A stretch of 64,000 bases of DNA. Source: Lepidodermella squamata (taxonomy: Eukaryota; Animalia; Gastrotricha). The position numbers and the translations under genes are program-made. The stretch covers positions 682,001 through 746,000 of the forward strand of contig JBLDXI010000004.1 of NCBI GenBank assembly GCA_047495785.1. The letters are read 5' to 3'. The notes beneath the pieces were generated by a model that was not told the DNA's origin, ran no database searches, and was given only the letters and a program-made list of their open reading frames with translations. Below, piece after piece: positions 1 to 28,498 of the stretch (positions are counted from its first letter, which is position 1; every line of letters starts with the position of its first letter).

Positions 1-133
1 TAGCCAGGATGGCCTATCAAAAATCAAAAATGAAAATAAGTCAAGAATAGTATTTCTATTACTATCATTGTCGGCTTGGCGGATTTTTATGGTTGCTGTC
101 ACTTTTTTGAGGTCATTGGTCGATGATGAGAGA

Positions 134-295
134 CGTAGCAAGCGAATTCGGCCCTATCTCTGTCTTTACAGTCATTTGAAAAACAACAGCTGACGCAAGG
201 TCATTATTGCAAAACACCCGATTTTCAAATGAATATGAAGCGGGGTTGTCCCTGGATCGGGTTTGGTCCGGGTCGGTTCGGGTACAATCGGGTCC
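134..295. repeat. 162-bp duplication flanking the PLE (left copy; partner 5158-5319)
   Basis: cgtagcaagcgaattc...aatcgggtcc on both sides, one mismatch seen. Confidence 0.85.
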
Positions 296-581
296 TCAGA
301 GGCACACAACCTAGCGGGTTGCCGCCAAGCTGTGGAACAGTTCGCATTGCTTACTGCTAAGATCTCATCCATGTGTGAGGCCAAGACGAGGCCGACAGCC
401 ACTTGGGCAGGAAATAACAATAATAGCAGTTGCCGGCAGAGAGTGTTTGAATGTCCTTAATGTCGCGGCTACGCTGAAGGCAGCCTGACGACGGCACTGG
501 CATTAGGCAACCAACAAGATACCTATAGCACTTCCAGGATTTCCCTGGCAGTGAGGCCTTGGATCTTTAGCTGGTCAAGCG
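288..581. repeat. PLE pseudo-LTR (3' copy)
   Basis: Matches 4866-5159 with about two mismatches seen. Confidence 0.9.
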
Positions 582-989
582 GTACCACCACGTCAAGGTT
601 CCAGTGCAAAGGTCCGTTTTTTTTTTTGTTAAGGACACTGGGTCGGCGGAGCGGGCCACATTGTGGTACCCTCAAGTGAGCCATTAGCTCACAAGTCCAA
701 TCAAACACACAAACCAACTGCAAACTTAATGCAGTCAAGAAAAGCCGTACGGATATGGCGTACCAAGAGTTGGCACGCACGTGCAGTGCGCGCAACTGGC
801 GCACACCGCCACGCTCTAACATAGGGCATTAGCCCAAGTGAGAGTTGAAGCCAGGATGCGTACCTGGCGGCTGCTACCAGCCAAGCGGGCATTGCCTGCT
901 TATGGGGTCCTGCCCTCAGGACCGGAGGCTCACCTAGGGCGCGGACTCCATCCGTAACGTCCTTTTAGCAGATGTCAGGGCGCTAAAGT

Positions 990-1709
990 TTAAGGGATCC
1001 CACGCCTCGTTGAGGACGCCTGACGCCGTGCGTAAAGGGCCTCATAGCTCGCAGTCTGTTCACAAAAGCAGTGTGGCCACCGTACATTGTCAGGGTGGTG
1101 GGTGGTGTCCTTCTTCCACCACTCCGCACAGATGCGCTTCCAGAAGTTCCGGAAGATGCAGCACGCCCGTGGGTGAGCGTTAATAAAATGTAGGTACATG
1201 CCGTGGATATTACGACAGCGGTAGTCGCATCTGCGAAAACCGCAGCGGAGTTCCTCAGAGATCGCCTGATAGAACGGTGTCGCCTTCTTCTGCTCCCAAA
1301 TTTTCAACCAGAAGTGATAGCGTGACATCGCCCGGTCACCCCCCGTCACAGGGGACATAGGTCTGGGGCGTGACGCGAGCTGGCTAGACTGAACGGAAGG
1401 CGGGAGTTCCACTACTTCCGGGGGCGTGGGACATTGGGGTTTACGCCCAGCAATGGGGAACATGAGACTTTGCCCAGCTGTGAAAAGAGACAATTTGCAC
1501 ATCAGCGTATGTTTATTGACAGACAGTACAACAATACTGAGTACACAGTTAGTATACATGAAAAGGTCTGTTAGCGCTCGGGCAGTGCCCATAGTGGCGC
1601 TCGCTTCAACGCGTACGCTGGTTCTTCTTCTGGGGGTCGCCAACGGCGCCACCTGCAAGACAAAAAGATCATTTAAGAATGAATCTTGAACGTCGATAGC
1701 GTCTGCCAA
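990..1709 (-). CDS. PLE second ORF, Cys/His-rich C2H2-like protein, probably spliced
   Basis: CGFRRC-x12-H-x4-H plus further Cys/His; minus-strand acceptor-like sites ctttttgtcttgcag (~1653) and tctcttttcacag (~1479). Confidence 0.55.
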   Translation of the reverse strand: MADAIDVQDSFLNDLFVLQVAPLATPRRRTSVRVEASATMGTARALTDLFMYTNCVLSIVVLSVNKHTLMCKLSLFTAGQSLMFPIAGRKPQCPTPPEVVELPPSVQSSQLASRPRPMSPVTGGDRAMSRYHFWLKIWEQKKATPFYQAISEELRCGFRRCDYRCRNIHGMYLHFINAHPRACCIFRNFWKRICAEWWKKDTTHHPDNVRWPHCFCEQTASYEALYARRQASSTRRGIP

Positions 1710-4700
1710 TCGACTGGTCCAACATGAGAGCCACTGGTACCCTCGCCCTGATCACCCGTAGGATTGGTAGCAGGGCTCGGTGGTATGTGAGCTTGTTGGT
1801 GGTGCGATGCACATTGTTAGGTCGCTTGGGTAACTTATAGGGCCAGTTTAGACCCTGCCTGTCCCGAGCTGTACTCTGGAGAGCAGTCACGAAGGAATGC
1901 CAAGAGTAGCCCCGTGCATGCAGCCTGATGGCGAGCTGCATGCATGCATGCATGAATGCCTGATGTGTCTGGCAGATGCGGAGAAAGCGCAGAATCTGTC
2001 CGCGCATTATGCCACGGAATACCTGAGGAGGGTGGTTAGAGCTGCCGTGGAGCAACGCTAAGTTGTCCGTTGGCTTAACGTATAGCCCAGTAGTGAGCTT
2101 ATCACCATGCCTATGGATGGAGATATCCAGGAAGTGTTGCTTGTCCACTGCGATTTCCGCAGAGACCTTAATGTTCGGGTGACTAGCCTCGTAAGACGCT
2201 ACGTAGTGCATGAGACCTTCCCTCATGAATGAGATAGACAGTATGTCATCCAGGAAGCGCGTAGTGTACATCGACCCACAGCCAAGGGATAGCCACCTCT
2301 CCTTGTAGTATAACCAACAAATGGCCACAGGTGGGGAGATGTTACCGCCCATCGCAAGGCCTCTCACCTGCTGGTAATATCTGCCATTAAAAGAAACCGT
2401 GTTGTGCCGTAGCACTAGCTCAGTGAGCTGACATGTCGGGTCCACGGCCTCCACGGGGACCCGGTGGAACTCAGTGAGGTACCAGCGGACGGACTGGACC
2501 GCCTCATCTATAGGCACCTGGTTATACATGTCATTGATGTCCGCTGACATGATGAATACAGGCCTCTCCGCGTTGCGAAGAAGCAGAGCGCGCACACGCT
2601 GGATAACCTGGAGGGTATCCTTCGCCGTAGTCTCCAGGTTATCCCATATCGGTTTCCTGTTCACGATGAGCGCCTTAAGCTGGGATTCCCCTGGACGGAA
2701 GTTGGTGCCCCCGATCAGCAAGCTTAAAGACCGGTCGAGCGCTGATGTATACGTGTTGTATGCATCAGTGATGGGCCTGACCTTTGGAAAACCCTTATCG
2801 TCCAGGGGTTTGTGGGTCTTGTAGTTGAAGTACATACACTTTTCCCGCGCCGGCAAGCCAATGTGGACCAGCAAAGGGTGATTGGTCTGGTACCACCTGC
2901 TCGCAAGCAGGAGACGGGAGTGGAGGGCATCTAAGGACGCCTGGAATTCCACAGCCCCGTCGTCGCCGCGCTGATGCCACATTGTAGCGTCACCGAGGAA
3001 ATTTTCCCCGACGGCGGCATAACGTTTCGCATCTTCCAAGATGAGAATATTACTCTTGTCGCTCTTGGTGAGGACAGTACCCTCAGGTAGTCCAAGTGGG
3101 GGGTCGCTACCCAAACGGCGTAGCAAACGTACCGCATCCCGCTTCACGCGCCTGGAGACATTCACACCATGCGACTTCGCAAAGTCAAGCGTGACGCGGA
3201 GATGGGACATGGCCTGGTTCCTAGCCAACGGTACATGTTTGAGGCCTTTGCCTAGCAATCTGAGCAGGCCAGGCGGGGCCCGCTCTGTGAGATCAATCAT
3301 GCCAAACATTCGGAGATTACGAATGTTGCGGGGTGAGAGTGGGAAAGAGACTGCGTCAGAGGACTCCCTGGCGCAGTAAGTACCCGGCACCAGTTCACGT
3401 GGGTAAAATGGTTCCCATACGTTGGTGTGGGAGAACTCAAGCTCCCAGACGTGGCCAGCGTGCTCCCGTAACATGTGAGGGAGGAAGGCTACGTAGTACA
3501 TGGTGAGCCTGCAGGGTAAGCAATGAACAGTCTGTCCATCGCATGAGGCGAGGAGGGCATTGCCCTCCATCCAGGCACCCATATAGGGTGCCATGGGCCA
3601 ATAGTTATAATGGCCTGAACGGAAAAGAAGAGACCTAAGGGCTACCAGAACGCTAATAGAGTGAGTCACACGATGTGTGGACAGTAGGTCAGTCCAGGTG
3701 TAATAGGACATACCGTTCGAGGCTGCCGACGGCGGCGGGACAGACGTCGCTTTCGGGGCCGCAGCAGGTCCGGTTGCGGGCGGCTGGGCGGTGGCAGGCT
3801 TCGGCCGCTGGTTGACGGCCTGGTCCGGCGAGGTGCGCTGATCGGCCATCGGGCGCGGCGCAGGGTGCTGCTCGACTGTAGGGTCCGTCACCGGGTGGTG
3901 CTCAACCGCAACGCTGGGCGCGGCCGGACCCTCGGCCGCAAGGAGCGGCACGGGGTTGTTCACGTCCATCATGTCCACCTCCACGTCGCGGAGGGCCATG
4001 GGTGAGGGCAGCGTTGTGTCACTCCCTACTAGTGCCATCTCACTCGCGTCCACAGCGAGCGCTCGTGCGTATAGCGCCGAGTCGAGATGCACACACAGCA
4101 GCTGAAACACGTCACATTCGTCTTGCAACGTGGCCGCCTTGAGTTTCTCAAGCGGCAAACGAAGGTCCAACTCTGCTAATTCGCCTGCTGTGAGTGGTGC
4201 GCTCGCCTGGTGGCACATAGGCCAACCCGTCGTCGCAGCGAAGCGGATCGCTTTCATCGGCCACGCCTGTGGGTCTTTCTTGTGGAGAAATGAGTAGCCG
4301 TCGAGAACAACGAGGTCGACGACCTTGCGGTCGAGACCAGAGAGGAGGTGGCGAACTCGGTCAAGAGCCGTGTAAGCATTCAAGACCTGCAGCTGGTCCT
4401 CAGTACTGAGTAACTCATCAAACGTCGAGCGGGCGACGGTCGCCAAATGAGAACGGAGCCTCGCCGGGGCTGTCGCCGGCACCTGGAAGGTCTTCACGAG
4501 TTCCAGGAGGCGTCCCTCTTCTTGCGGAGAAAGACGGCCAAGAGCCCGAAGCAGCATGCGTTGGCCGCAGTGATGTACGGCGGACCAGAAGAAGCCGAGC
4601 CGCTTCTGGGCCTCGCTGTGGTCCGGAGCTGGGGGAGCCACCACCGCGGTGTTGGCGGCGGGGGACCGATAAAGAGCAAGGACTTCTTGGAACAGCTGGC

Positions 4701-4791
4701 GCGTATCCACGCCGGCAGCAGCAGTCCGCGGCGCCTTAGCAGGGCGCGGCTGCCGATTGGCAAATTGTTTCTTAACGTTTTTAGCTGACAT
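1669..4791 (-). CDS. PLE reverse transcriptase ORF (1040 aa) with long N-terminal extension and C2H2-like motif; no GIY-YIG seen
   Basis: Motifs IDLT..LLGKGLKHVP, TKSDKS (DKG-like), YFNYKTHK..VRPI, SADINDMYNQVP, YQQVRGLAMGGNISP, RFLDD, FLDISI, YVKPTD..LHGSSNHP..GQILRFLRIC; CLPC-x11-H-x4-H upstream. Confidence 0.9.
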   Translation of the reverse strand: MSAKNVKKQFANRQPRPAKAPRTAAAGVDTRQLFQEVLALYRSPAANTAVVAPPAPDHSEAQKRLGFFWSAVHHCGQRMLLRALGRLSPQEEGRLLELVKTFQVPATAPARLRSHLATVARSTFDELLSTEDQLQVLNAYTALDRVRHLLSGLDRKVVDLVVLDGYSFLHKKDPQAWPMKAIRFAATTGWPMCHQASAPLTAGELAELDLRLPLEKLKAATLQDECDVFQLLCVHLDSALYARALAVDASEMALVGSDTTLPSPMALRDVEVDMMDVNNPVPLLAAEGPAAPSVAVEHHPVTDPTVEQHPAPRPMADQRTSPDQAVNQRPKPATAQPPATGPAAAPKATSVPPPSAASNGMSYYTWTDLLSTHRVTHSISVLVALRSLLFRSGHYNYWPMAPYMGAWMEGNALLASCDGQTVHCLPCRLTMYYVAFLPHMLREHAGHVWELEFSHTNVWEPFYPRELVPGTYCARESSDAVSFPLSPRNIRNLRMFGMIDLTERAPPGLLRLLGKGLKHVPLARNQAMSHLRVTLDFAKSHGVNVSRRVKRDAVRLLRRLGSDPPLGLPEGTVLTKSDKSNILILEDAKRYAAVGENFLGDATMWHQRGDDGAVEFQASLDALHSRLLLASRWYQTNHPLLVHIGLPAREKCMYFNYKTHKPLDDKGFPKVRPITDAYNTYTSALDRSLSLLIGGTNFRPGESQLKALIVNRKPIWDNLETTAKDTLQVIQRVRALLLRNAERPVFIMSADINDMYNQVPIDEAVQSVRWYLTEFHRVPVEAVDPTCQLTELVLRHNTVSFNGRYYQQVRGLAMGGNISPPVAICWLYYKERWLSLGCGSMYTTRFLDDILSISFMREGLMHYVASYEASHPNIKVSAEIAVDKQHFLDISIHRHGDKLTTGLYVKPTDNLALLHGSSNHPPQVFRGIMRGQILRFLRICQTHQAFMHACMQLAIRLHARGYSWHSFVTALQSTARDRQGLNWPYKLPKRPNNVHRTTNKLTYHRALLPILRVIRARVPVALMLDQSIGRRYRRSRFILK

Positions 4792-4865
4792 CTAATCAGA
4801 CAATAAAACATTTAGGATGTTACATAGGAGATTATCACACATGTCAACGGAGATCGTATATATGG

Positions 4866-5159
4866 TCGGGTCTTCAGAGGCACACAACCTAGCGGGTTGC
4901 CGCCAAGCTGTGGAACAGTTCGCATTGCTTACTGCTAAGATCTCATCCATGTGTGAGGCCAAGACGAGGCCGACAGCCACTTGGGCAGGAAATAACAATA
5001 ATAGCAGTTGTCGGCAGAGAGTGTTTGAATGTCCTTAATGTCGCGGCTACGCTGAAGGCAGCCTGACGACGGCACTGGCATTAGGCAACCAACAAGATAC
5101 CTATAGCACTTCCAGGATTTCCCTGGCAGTGAGGCCTTGGATCTTTAGCTGGTCAAGCG
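4866..5159. repeat. PLE pseudo-LTR (5' copy)
   Basis: Matches 288-581. Confidence 0.9.
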
Positions 5160-5319
5160 TAGCAAGCGAATTCGGCCCTATCTCTGTCTTTACAGTCATT
5201 TGAAAAACAACAGCTGACGCAAGGTCATTATTGCAAAACACCCGATTTTCAAATGAATATGAAGCGGGGTTGTCCTTGGATCGGGTTTGGTCCGGGTCGG
5301 TTCGGGTACAATCGGGTCC
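5158..5319. repeat. 162-bp duplication flanking the PLE (right copy)
   Basis: Direct copy of 134-295. Confidence 0.85.
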
Positions 5320-6023
5320 GACATCTTAGACCTGAAGACAACAGACAGAGATGGGGCCGATATCACTTACTATGTCTCTAAACATCGACCAATAAATGCC
5401 AAATTGAGTGAACAAAGCCGCAGTCCAGTACCTCAAGCTGCAAGTTTTCCTCATTTTTGTTACACGATCATGAAAATTCACAGCCAGGTCACAGGAAAGC
5501 CGAGAAAAAATTGGAAACAATTTACCAGAAAAAGTCATATGACAGCCTCAGGCCAGCTGTTTTTAGCTTTCGGTGCGCCATAGGCTCTCAAAAAATGCAG
5601 CGGGCTATTCAAATGGGCACGGACTCAAAGAAATAGGGCTATCGCGCGAATCATTGATTTAGGGCCCCATTTTAACGCACCTGACTACAGTTTCACTTTT
5701 GTGGTTACAATTCGCAGGTTTTGTTTACATAGTGCGCGCACAGGTGACACTTTACATTTTGGCTACGATTTACAGGATTAAGACTACGAAATTTATTTTA
5801 GCGTTTTAATATTACTTTTAATTTCCTGGCTGGTTGCCTCAGCCATAACAACTACATATACATGCTAAATACCAACGTAAATAACAAAACAGTTAACTTG
5901 CCTGTGACAAAAGGCAATTGCCGTAATTGCTCGCAAAGTCAGCCTTCGATCTAAATGTCGATAGCTGCGAAAAAAATGCGAATATAAGTCTGACGACTCC
6001 TTCGAGTACTGGAAAGGAATAAA

Positions 6024-6137
6024 TTACGACTGCCATGGGCAGGTATTATGGCATACAGGACTAGATGCAGTCGAACAAAGTCCAGCACGTACGCCTGTGG
6101 TGCAGTGATATTTGTCGATGTATGTTCTGCCTGTTGC
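6024..6137 (-). other. Possible terminal exon of a small Cys-rich protein
   Basis: ttttcag acceptor then ATGRTYIDKYHCTTGVRAGLCSTASSPVCHNTCPWQS*. Confidence 0.25.
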
Positions 6138-7000
6138 CTGAAAATGAACCTCAGAAATACCTCCATTCTTCATTGGAAACAGCAGCAGCGTAGCTGCTAC
6201 AGTAGCGCCGGGGGAACCCATTGTACATCTTTCCGTATATTTTGTACATTTACATAATGGATAAAAAAGGTGTTATGTGTCTTTTATGAGTAGTAGGTTA
6301 GGTATACTGAAAACCAGTCATCGATAGGTGGAAGGGGTCATGTTTTACATGTTACTTCGTTATCAGTTAGCTCCACGTCGTATGACGAGATGCTGGAAGA
6401 TAATGTGTTTTTCCTGAGCAGTTTAACAGTTTAAAATTTAAACGCCAAACGGAGCAGTTTTAACACTTTAACGCATAGGTTACCTCATAGGTTACGCATA
6501 GGTTAGTCAGGGTTTTTTTTAAGCAAACGATTGGTTGTTACAAACGATTGTTTGGTAGTTACCTCGCTCGAAAGCGAAATTTTGTGTGCCGCATTGGTGA
6601 AAATTAAATGTAATTTTTACCAATGATACGAGCGAAGCGAGAAAATTGTGAGGATTTTCCACTAGAAAAGGCTGCGAAACCTCCTAAAAATGAGGTTACA
6701 ACAGTTTTTTCCAGGCGTTACTTCGATTTTGGTTGTTACATTTGGTCCGATTGGTTGTTACATTGTAACATGTGTAACATGCTTAGCAAATTCGAGAATA
6801 CTAACTGTTAGTATTCTCGAATTTTCAGAATATAGCCATAATATTATACTCACAAATTTGCAGAAAATCGCCGTATACCGTATATGTGAGTATGAGGGTG
6901 TGCTACTTTTATTTTATTTTACACCATATACTCACAGGTGAGTAAGCGTTTTGCAGCGTATCGCCGTATACTCAAATATAGCATTCGCTCAAAAAACATG

Positions 7001-10125: not shown

Positions 10126-10418
10126 CAGAGTTGTCCACGGGCCTAATTTTTGGAACCCGGCCCGGCCCGTGGTCATAATAAACCGGATTCTCAGCAATGG
10201 CGAGCTGAATATTTCTGTTGAATTTGCACTGGCTTAAACGCTTAACTCATGGCTATACAAGTTTAATAGTTCTTAGTATTCAATATTGTCATTTGAGATT
10301 AATTACATGTGTGTTAGTGGTTCCTAGCTAAGGGTTTTGAGCCCTACTAGAGACAGGTCTCAAAGTCAGACCGGAACCCGACCCGTACCCGGCCCGGCCC
10401 GATCCTGGCTAAACCCTG
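10126..10418. mobile_element. hAT-type MITE, related to 28168-28498
   Basis: Starts cagagttgtccacggg; CCCGG/CCCGA subterminal repeats; degenerate right end aaaccctg. Confidence 0.6.
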
Positions 10419-11578
10419 CCCACTCCCATAACTGTGGCTTGTTATTTTAGTTACCGTTCTGCCCGAATCATTCCACGCATTTTTCAAATGATGGCTGCCA
10501 CCTGAAATTTAGTGGTTACCCAATGGATTACAATGGGTACTGATCACGTTATCTTTCGAACTCTCGATCTCAACATCTATCGACTCTAGTTAAGTATGTT
10601 CTCTGCATCCTATCAACTGCTACATCAAATTTTAAATTCTGAATTTTCGATAGGATTTTTTTACTTCAATTTTTACTCGGATTTGCCGATTTTGTTATAT
10701 CTGATTGGATATTGGAATTTGACATTTATTGGAGATATGAGATGGAAAGTGGCGAAATTCTGGCAAAAGGTCGCTCTTAACAGTTGCTGAGTGCTGGTTA
10801 CTTCGATCTATTCAACCTGTTACCTGTTATCGCCCTTCCTGCTGGAACTATAAGTGTGTGATGAATTATTATATTGGTTTCATTTCATTCGCTCATTTGC
10901 TCATTTGCTGCCTTAAGAATAAAGATAAAGATGTACGGCACCAGGTCACGGTCACTCGTTTTTGCTACCTGTAGAATCTTCGATCGAAGAATTCATGAAG
11001 AGCATGAGAAACATTTGAGTGAGAAATGAGAAAGGTTTATAGGCGAAGAAGCTGAGTTACTCCCTTCAAGAGTCCAAGAATCGCTGAGAACGCAAGATCG
11101 CTGCTAATGGCAATTTTATAGCCCCTGAACTGAAAATAGTAATATGGGATTCAACCGCTCCGCAGTTGTAAACAACCGCTATAAAGTGGTCTAATGATAT
11201 ATAGTAATATGTGCTAGCACTGGCGGTTCCTTACGTCGCAACACGAACGATATGCTGATGGTCGTACGTAAGTGTTAGACGTGCCATCCTGGTGTCCTTC
11301 GAATCAGGACCCTTGGAAACTTGTAAATATGCCAACGAAAATAGGGATTCATTTTTTCACCACCAACGCATAACCCGACAAATGGCCAATTGTGACTTGC
11401 CCCATCCAGTAAAACCGAATACAGCCATTGCGGTCATGTCGGAGCATGGAGTCAAGCATTGCACACACAGTGCACATGGGTGCATACAAACAAACAAAGA
11501 AACAAAGATTTCCACGACACGAACGGCGACAGTACGGGGGTTCCCCCGGCATTGTTCAGTGTTCGAGAAATTTCATAC

Positions 11579-27226: not shown

Positions 27227-28167
27227 CACAGTATGGCTAAAAATCACGATTTCATGAGAAAAAAATATGTATAAAGGTTATTTTTCCATTAAATATGAAA
27301 TTCGTAATTTTTAATCGACCAAATCATCAAAAAACTATGATTATGCAGTCATTTTTCGAAATTAACAGAAGTTCCTATAGAGCCATGTTATTTGGGAAAT
27401 TTTTGAGTTGGATTTTATTAGGCTCGCACCTTAGGGTGGCAAATCAAATCCTTTTCTTAAAAACACATCGCCACATCCAGAACTTTGCAATTCACATTTG
27501 AAATGAAAAAACTCTGCATCAATTCTTCCAAAATATAATCGCCTAAAAAATCATTTAAATCCGAACCCCCTTTTTGTATGAGGTACGCTTTTTAATCTCA
27601 GATGTAGGGCTCTATACTGAGCTCTATATCTAAATCCTATTAAATAACCCTAATTTATTCCTATATGTTCTGAAGCGATAGAACCGGGGCGATAAAATAA
27701 TTTGTTCGAAAACAACGATTAGACAATAAAAAACTATTATTACTACTTTTTATACGACTACTTGTATTATAGCCTTGAGAAAAATCTGGAAAACTGGTGA
27801 AAAGTTTCTGATGAGTTTCTTGGCAGAAACGAAACGCAATCTCAGCGCAGCCCGAAAACCGACTCATTTCGAAAGATTAAATATTGAAAATCCAATCGCT
27901 AAAATTAAGAAAAAATCTGTCAATAATTTAGTGCTTTTTATCGACCAAATTTTTTTTCAAAATTAATCCTCCTTAATAAGCTGTTCTGAGATTGCGTCAA
28001 ACTTGCCATCACCAAGTTTTGCAGCTAAAATGACTATATTTTTGTTAGCCAATGCGCAAATGCCGTTTTCCTAAAAATGACCATAAATAAGTGGCGTCGA
28101 GCAAGCATAGTTTACTAAAATTGCAGTGCGCATCATTTAATGACAGAATTTAGAGAATAGCGTAGCC

Positions 28168-28498
28168 CAGAGTTGTCCACGGGTCGAAAAATTGAGGCCC
28201 GACCGAGCCCGTCAGTAAATATCTCCAAACCCGGCCCGGCCCGTAGAAGAAAAGTCACACGAAATTAGTATTCCTTCTTCCTTTTCGATGCTCAAAAACT
28301 TCAAAGAGACGTCATTTTTACTCGAAGTTGGCATTATATTGATGTTTTGCTACGGGAATAACTTAAAATCTTACTGTCAAATTTACTGAAAGCAATTGCA
28401 AAGAAATCCTAGAAGACGGGTTTTGAAAACCAGAGGATTGGAAAACCCATACCCGCCCAAACCCGGCCCGGGTTAAACCCGGCCCGTGGACAACTCTG
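28168..28498. mobile_element. hAT-type MITE
   Basis: TIR cagagttgtccacggg / cccgtggacaactctg; perfect 8-bp TSD gcgtagcc. Confidence 0.92.

Follow-up and report, generated by a model that had tools for sequence, protein, structure and literature searches.

Organization of the locus

The 64,000-nt stretch of DNA from the gastrotrich Lepidodermella squamata analyzed here (contig JBLDXI010000004.1, positions 682,001 to 746,000; hereafter, the window) harbors at positions 134-5319 a Penelope-like element (PLE) in which no endonuclease (EN) was found, together with a duplicated segment of its target. A repeat search of positions 1-7000 resolved this region into the order A (162 nt), B (294 nt), internal sequence (4284 nt), B, and A, and reported exactly two repeat families, both direct, and no inverted repeats. 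The left copy of the duplicated target A occupies 134-295 (+) and is identical at 161 of 162 positions to the right copy at 5158-5319 (+), which was delimited by the repeat search and by direct comparison, and whose continuity into the right flank is matched by a paralogue at 10354-10419. The element itself lies on the minus strand, where the upstream pseudo-long terminal repeat (pLTR), B, forms the 5′ end of the insertion at 4866-5159 (repeat search and direct comparison), the internal body covers 582-4865, and the downstream pLTR, which constitutes the element 3′ end, is located at 288-581 and matches the upstream one at 292 of 294 positions. Body and one B add up to a unit of 4578 nt, equal to the spacing of the repeats, and the complete insert (pLTR-body-pLTR) measures 4872 nt on the minus strand. 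A 294-nt direct repeat at a spacing of 4578 nt corresponds to the pLTRs that PLEs form from partial tandem copies.

Direct comparison revealed a single difference between the two A copies (252 C/5276 T) and two between the B copies (295 C/4873 T and 433 C/5011 T). Chance cannot account for two such near-identical repeat pairs, one of 162 nt and the other of 294 nt, and their equal divergence (0.6-0.7%) fits an origin in one event. The same differences bear on an assembly artefact, in which the second A copy would come from a wrong join at a heterozygous insertion. This is extremely improbable, as there is one difference between the A copies and the B copies are not identical either, an assembler would not invent a B/A joint with a 2-nt overlap, and read run X1 has depth over 4694-5442, with no difference in that interval among the differences listed.

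The junctions between element and target exhibit microhomology. At the element 3′ junction, the heptanucleotide tcgggtc (288-294) both ends A (5312-5318) and begins B (4866-4872); position 295 is the target C and not the element T present in the other B copy and, consequently, the microhomology amounts to 7 nt within the A/B overlap at 288-295. At the 5′ junction, B and A overlap by the dinucleotide cg (5158-5159). According to our own arithmetic, a 7-nt overlap would be expected by chance with a frequency of about 6e-5 per junction.

No array of at least two TTAGGG/CCCTAA units occurs in the window, where positions 1-6000 contain a single TTAGGG hexamer, at 5659. Since the window lacks such an array and the contig runs at least 22 kb leftward beyond it, the insertion site is internal. 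No further copies of A, B, or the body were detected elsewhere in the 64-kb window, and TRF reported no tandem array containing A. An earlier sequence-only reading of this DNA had described the A-B-internal-B-A order with A of 162 bp and B of about 290 bp, the 7-nt and 2-nt junction microhomologies, and the absence of telomeric repeats from both element ends, and the repeat search, the junction comparison, and the hexamer search reproduced each of these features. Recent activity, proposed from the near-identical repeats, agrees with the 1/162 and 2/294 differences; the copy is young, and its first open reading frame (ORF) is intact.

The duplicated target

The segment A is supported as host DNA by its surroundings. 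The left arm of a target inverted repeat resembling a miniature inverted-repeat transposable element (MITE) spans 115-165, and thereby the boundary between the left flank and A at 133/134, while its right arm lies at 5343-5393 within the right flank; the first matches the reverse complement of the second at 84% over 51 nt (E 4e-10). Because the inverted repeat crosses the left boundary, the left A is in its native context and the right flank belongs to the same palindromic repeat. Moreover, the paralogue at 10354-10419 is continuous across the boundary between A and the right flank (71% over 72 nt, E 2e-4) and, as this boundary is unbroken in a related transposon end, the outer side of the right A is in its native context too. 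When 100-295 is joined to 5320-5410 to reconstruct the empty site, the product folds into a single long hairpin, with a ΔG of -56.9 kcal/mol and a z-score of -6.2, in which position 134 pairs with 5374. This agrees with the earlier proposal that A is host DNA resembling the end of a hAT MITE, for which the inverted repeat across the left boundary and the paralogue continuous across the right one provide the evidence. From these comparisons, A is most plausibly a duplicated target segment.

At 167/5191 the two A copies have a T, in contrast to the C found in each of the five A-like contigs from run X1; this private base, common to both, indicates that they are duplicates of each other and not two paralogues. 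Recombination of two MITE paralogues through two PLE copies was considered and rejected on the same grounds, given that the A copies are 99.4% identical and have this private base in common. DIRS/Ngaro elements, with split direct repeats in the order A1-body-B1-A2-B2, were discarded as well, since the repeat order misfits and no tyrosine recombinase was found. In run X1, A-like sequence is much more plentiful than the body, with a summed depth of 350-600 vs. about 42-150, values that are not readable as copy number. More ends of the GGGTC-rich, hAT-like repeat family of the target are visible in the window at 10335-10470 (-) and 28452-28494 (-).

Altogether, the locus documents a single recent retrotransposition of a complete EN-less PLE into a MITE-like hairpin at an internal site, with duplication of 162 bp of target.

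Element proteins

ORF1 (1669-4791, minus strand) is intact and encodes a protein of 1040 aa comprising a helical N-terminus, a Pro/Ala-rich linker, a C2H2 finger, PLE N-terminal motifs, a reverse transcriptase (RT), and a thumb, immediately after which comes the stop codon. The PLE motifs include LLGKGLKHVP, TKSDKSN, the RT blocks, RFLDD, and YVKPTD...SSNHP in the thumb; the N-terminal GxK and DK(S)N motifs are present upstream of the RT, and K and G of the first are invariant in a five-sequence alignment. Pfam returned a weak RVT_1 match alone for ORF1. Exhaustive HMMER searches yielded 8881 matches, 13 of them with E below 1e-30, the best of which span the whole RT and thumb, and a word-index search retrieved PLE proteins, some with a C-terminal GIY-YIG domain. 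Homologues of ORF1 bear PF28514/PF26215 (HTH_animal), and the EN-containing (EN+) members also PF01541. The Penelope-like identity first read from the letters is, therefore, sustained by the nearest RT relatives, which are PLEs, and by the GxK, DK(S)N, and thumb motifs.

The nearest complete proteins are P0056 (41% identity), P0057 (37%), P0001 (34%), and P0058 (32%), all of which align to the last residues of ORF1 and terminate there too; P0057 is colinear with full-length ORF1, N-terminus included. As these relatives end where ORF1 ends, the stop after the thumb is ancestral and not the result of truncation. The C2H2-type finger (residues 424-444; 3460-3522, minus strand) is followed by WELEFS, and both are kept in the five nearest relatives; the spacing is CX2C-X11-H-X4-H, with C424, H439, and H444 invariant in the alignment with relatives. 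The first 360 residues are predicted to be helical, and AlphaFold gave for the N-terminus a predicted local distance difference test (pLDDT) of 36 from the single sequence and of 33 from a three-sequence alignment, with no recognizable fold. A word search with this N-terminus produced no match, the Protein Atlas gave only weak leads (DUF8422 clusters, 0.88), nothing matched in a sequence search of the PDB, and public assemblies hold no record of the exact ORF1 protein.

The second frame, ORF2, is open over 990-1709 and has a conserved core at 1068-1337 (minus strand) with a zinc-finger-like CX4C...H...H arrangement. Its residues 125-214 recover by tblastn two relatives' loci, L003 (E 6e-12) and L002 (E 1e-8); a third, L001, shows a weak C2H2 match. 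ORF2 is, thus, homologous to the zinc-finger ORFs of the relatives and represents a genuine accessory gene. The small protein encoded 3′ of the RT, with a W..KI/W motif and a CX4C...H...H finger, is conserved throughout this EN-less lineage and can also be seen at L002 3724-3933, L003 3799-4080, and L001 4437-5354.

Nuclease search and lineage of the element

Pfam searches at E ≤ 10 with ORF1 split into overlapping thirds, with ORF2, and with the antisense ORFs gave no nuclease family. A PLE-EN profile was built from the EN domains of P0002, P0004, and P0007; as a positive control, it recognized this domain in 78 of the roughly 160 other PLE proteins examined, the lowest E being 1e-70. Against ORF1 and ORF2, hhalign gave this profile a probability below 0.1%, and hmmsearch with --max and filters off, over all open stretches of at least 30 aa in the six frames of 1-6000, reached a best score of 7 bits. 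No EN was detected with the profile among the relatives of the query either. In EN+ PLEs, the GIY-YIG domain is C-terminal (Penelope/Poseidon, Neptune, Nematis, and Hydra) or N-terminal (Naiad and Chlamys). A degenerate N-terminal GIY-YIG at residues 417-445, in a Naiad/Chlamys-like permuted order, was tried and rejected because its spacing is that of C2H2 and it has none of the GIY, YIG, and R residues. The earlier statement that no GIY-YIG is legible in any frame is, thus, borne out by Pfam, the control-validated profile, and the six-frame search; the detection of a nuclease domain would have spoken against an EN-less element, and Pfam, hhalign, and hmmsearch were all blank.

In a maximum-likelihood tree of 75 RT regions, whose reference rows are PLE proteins without Athena or Coprina names, the query RT falls in a clade of 16 (Shimodaira-Hasegawa-like approximate likelihood ratio test, SH-aLRT, 100) composed of 14 complete sequences without EN and two fragments, with no EN+ member. 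The remaining 59 rows form the sister clade, which contains all 37 EN+ proteins. As the whole surrounding clade is without EN, the element comes from a deep EN-less lineage and does not represent a recent EN loss. The lack of endonuclease is, consequently, a lineage trait, as reflected both in this EN-free clade and in the end-to-end alignment of ORF1 with the C-termini of its relatives.

The loci of the relatives contain two or three ORFs, namely, an N-terminal ORF, an RT ORF, and a zinc-finger ORF, and their unit length is 4588-4675 nt (4.6-4.7 kb) vs. 4578 nt in the window. The closest relative, the metagenome contig L003, has an exact terminal overlap of 127 nt (1-127 = 4676-4802), which indicates a tandem or circular unit of 4675 nt.

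The element 3′ end and the hammerhead ribozyme

Relatives carry canonical minimal PLE-type hammerhead ribozymes 3′ of the zinc-finger ORF, at L001 5373-5412 and L003 4663-4702, with helices I and II covarying between both, and the last bases of the L002 contig stop within a hammerhead. In the window, Rfam reported no hammerhead at E ≤ 1. Nevertheless, Rfam cmscan also misses the true hammerheads of L001 and L003, even at E ≤ 0.1, so that a blank Rfam result is weak evidence against a ribozyme of this type. The core pattern CTGANGA...GAAA has no match within 134-5319, a relaxed pattern gave one match only, which crosses the element-target joint, and local alignment to the L003 ribozyme produced background scores only.

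On the minus strand, the unit ends with 14 nt composed of CTGAAGA and then CCCGACC, and in the relatives' ribozymes the order is CTGAAGA, helix II, GAAA, and CCGGTC, with cleavage after that C. The element 3′ end may, on this short match, be a collapsed ribozyme that has lost helix II and GAAA. As a separate observation, the unit 3′ ends at 286-301 and 4864-4879 (minus strand) both show CTGA(A/G)GA followed by CCCGA(CC). RNA folds of 262-337 and 4840-4915 contain a 13-bp stem-loop at 305-334 (minus strand), 19 nt from the element 3′ terminus, with the same hairpin at 4883-4912.

At the opposite end of L002, positions 1-40 contain AACCTAACCT, about 1.6 units of CCTAA, which is the complement of the arthropod-type telomere repeat and adjoins the end-of-contig hammerhead.

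Other copies of the element

Evidence on other copies consists of short contigs of read runs X1 and X2, the latter from a second organism, among the matches listed and with 30-nt consensus ends. Run X1 contains an exact contig over body positions 3280-4893 and near-identical contigs elsewhere, which indicates a small number of young copies in the family. Both joints between B and the body, at 581/582 and 4865/4866, are crossed by X2 contigs, so that B belongs to the element in two organisms. Members of this PLE family are present in run X2 with an identity of about 88-99%, mostly in internally deleted form (joints 1736>3503 and 3685>4745).

In two contigs of X1, B starts at 4864 and adjoins another flank; the 3′ terminus has, therefore, been reused within 2 nt. 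At the other end of B, contigs of X1 and X2 break at 574, within 8 nt of its boundary. This suggests that B is a discrete module and not an arbitrary 5′-truncated partial copy. An A shared by all copies would have made A part of the element; in the limited set of other-copy contigs, B has a different flank. That flank in X1 is similar to the inverted GGGTC-rich tail of A, with a score of 28 vs. at most 21 for other loose ends. Furthermore, one X2 contig joins 927-834 to the target repeat at 251-104 through 11 other letters. These contigs suggest that the PLE family repeatedly adjoins this repeat family, with joints that differ each time.

Such an association could also be produced by a composite block, in which A-B-internal-B-A, or a read-through RNA with MITE flanks, moves among MITE copies by homology-driven conversion and the duplication arose only once, elsewhere. 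The co-occurrence above chance of PLE sequence and target repeat family would fit with it, as would the two X1 contigs with the flank resembling an inverted A tail and the X2 contig that joins 927-834 to 251-104. However, the junction positions and orientation in the contigs differ from those of the window, with no fixed A-B joint in common, and in the window the left flank, A, and the right flank constitute a single coherent hairpin repeat, which makes this explanation very improbable.

The positions of the termini bear in turn on a DNA-only origin by microhomology-mediated break-induced replication or fork stalling and template switching (MMBIR/FoSTeS), in which a fork collapsing in the hairpin repeat would switch by microhomology to a DNA copy of the PLE, copy 4.9 kb, and resume 162 nt behind the break. 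Replicative template switching classically leaves a breakpoint duplication and microhomology at the two junctions, and the target is a strong hairpin. Nevertheless, the insert is exactly one complete element, with its 3′ end within 2 nt of the end at 4864 in the two other contigs and its 5′ end at the other B boundary, close to where other contigs break (574, within 8 nt), while a random switch would meet each terminus by chance about once in 500 (our own estimate). Accordingly, a DNA-only switch seems hardly probable.

Proposed mechanism of insertion

Two 3′ ends are required by the geometry of the locus, one on the plus strand at 295 and one on the minus strand at 134, which together amount to complementary 3′ overhangs of 162 nt. 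With a probability of roughly 0.6, judged from this one locus, the insertion would have taken place through endonuclease-independent, microhomology-primed reverse transcription, with a second 3′ end located 162 nt away. In such a mechanism, the plus-strand DNA end at 295 (...tcgggtcc-3′) would anneal over 7 nt with the 3′ terminus of the element RNA (...GACCCGA(CC)-3′) and be taken as primer by the element's own RT. Synthesis of complementary DNA (cDNA) would then cover 1.064 units, either from a terminally redundant RNA or by a jump to a second template, which are the usual origins of PLE pLTRs. The cDNA end would join the minus-strand 3′ end 162 nt upstream via the 2-nt overlap (cg), and fill-in of the two complementary 162-nt 3′ overhangs would yield the duplication. 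Neither 3′ end would be made by the element; both could be nicks or breaks in the hairpin-prone repeat or, alternatively, the nascent strand at a stalled fork could switch to the RNA and then back to the template 162 nt behind. It has been proposed that EN-minus PLEs prime on exposed 3′ ends via RNA-DNA homology (PMC8557442, PMC13159263), EN-less families need "alternative means of securing 3′-OH groups" (PMC8557442), and formation of the PLE 5′ junction through microhomology is documented (PMC3846280).

Several points weigh against primed reverse transcription at pre-existing ends. A resected double-strand break gives no complementary overhangs and, thus, either a pair of nicks separated by 162 nt or template switching at a replication fork is required. 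The flank of B in the X1 contigs, which resembles the repeat family in inverted orientation, is not explained by simple annealing of the 3′ end. Neither an empty allele nor an empty site at an orthologous locus was observed, and no listed contig skips 296-5319; as A is 162 nt long, an empty allele would give no diagnostic 31-mers. A junction k-mer search in run X1 found three of seven words. Finally, a cryptic nuclease in the N-terminal 360 residues of ORF1 is unsupported, yet conceivable given the low confidence of the structural models.

The two ends might instead have been produced by a nuclease acting in trans, such as the GIY-YIG of an EN+ PLE, the endonuclease of a long interspersed nuclear element (LINE), or a stand-alone GIY-YIG of the host, which would nick the strands 162 nt apart and be followed by ordinary target-primed reverse transcription. 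Opposite-strand 3′ ends with the duplication between them are the geometry of nuclease-made target duplications, and the PLE EN yields duplications of variable length (PMC8557442). However, the cited PLE target duplications are 8-10 bp or absent (PMC3846280) vs. 162 bp here, the 7-nt overlap with the RNA 3′ end favors annealing over site-specific cutting, and a PLE EN is not known to work in trans; a nuclease in trans is, hence, a doubtful alternative to microhomology-primed reverse transcription.

A broader scenario can be put forward tentatively, although it is rather unlikely in its entirety. A branch of the telomere-attaching, EN-free PLE lineage could have lost its ribozyme and its telomere-complementary tail and could home to the GGGTC-rich subterminal repeats of one hairpin MITE family through base pairing between the 3′ end of its RNA (GACCCGA...) and DNA 3′ ends that are free or nascent, with Okazaki- or nucleosome-sized duplications arising as the cDNA re-anneals behind a stalled fork. 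If true, homing through the RNA 3′ end would be a sequence-guided, endonuclease-free mode of insertion.

Comparison with known systems and significance

Among transposons, EN-less PLEs are most closely related to telomerase, and their inability to cut DNA is held to restrict them to chromosome ends. The window copy, which is young, intact, full length, and internal, with a defined 3′ end, a 7-nt overlap between RNA and target, and a long duplication, bears on this view. The locus provides a natural example of an EN-less RT using non-telomeric 3′ ends, which is also relevant to how retroelements may have spread before the acquisition of nucleases. The repeated association with one hairpin repeat, if true, would offer a testable case of nuclease-free target choice, as read from a single locus.

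As in Athena of bdelloid rotifers and Coprina of fungi, protists, and plants, the RT-only ORF ends after the thumb, the EN-less clade is sister to EN+ PLEs, accessory ORFs and a head-to-tail pLTR organization are present, and homology between the RNA 3′ end and an exposed DNA 3′ end is proposed to permit priming; a minimal hammerhead at the unit joint is likewise shared by the nearest relatives of the window element. In contrast, the window copy is internal, has no telomeric repeats at either end, lacks a hammerhead, and is flanked by a 162-bp duplication, and its 3′ tail matches a GGGTC-rich repeat and not a telomere. Judged from its RT, architecture, and clade, and in comparison with unnamed relatives, the element is an EN-less PLE that departs from the habits of telomeric attachment, which in the Athena/Coprina type places reverse-complement telomeric repeats at the 3′ end, and hammerhead possession.

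EN-minus families nested in EN+ clades are represented by Chlamys PLE-X of Selaginella and Chara and by the Neptune-like MjPLE01 of kuruma shrimp (PMC8557442). EN loss is secondary in those cases, whereas the whole clade of the window element is without EN. The EN+ elements Pen1-3 of Adineta vaga resemble it in their direct pLTRs, which are about 200-300 bp long and derive from partial tandems, and in a 5′ junction made through microhomology, but they encode a GIY-YIG EN and generate target duplications of 0-10 bp (PMC3846280), in contrast to the 162 bp found here with no detectable EN.

Outside PLEs, two further systems are comparable. Endonuclease-independent L1 insertions typically show no target duplication, and truncations and accompanying deletions are frequent among them, unlike the window insertion, which is full length and has a long duplication. 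L1 insertion at DNA lesions can be endonuclease-independent (PMC1920257), and a pre-existing 3′ end is used there with microhomology at the junctions, similar to what is proposed for the window element. The duplication of R9, which was reportedly given as 126 bp by Gladyshev and Arkhipova in 2009, exceeds 100 bp like that of the window; however, R9 reportedly encodes its own site-specific endonuclease and makes the same ribosomal DNA (rDNA) duplication every time, and no nuclease was detected in the window element. A title cited in PMC8557442 likewise attributes an exceptionally long target duplication to the rDNA-specific R9 non-LTR elements of rotifers.

Minor sequence features

Outside the element, the window contains at 27808-27834 (+) a hammerhead-core-like sequence, CTGATGAG-TTTC...GAAAC-GAAA, with a 5-bp helix II; Rfam at its gathering threshold was blank in the window. 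In the relative L001, positions 535-606 (minus strand) form a 31-nt inverted repeat that matches the mir-2944 model below the gathering score (35 bits, E 3e-4).

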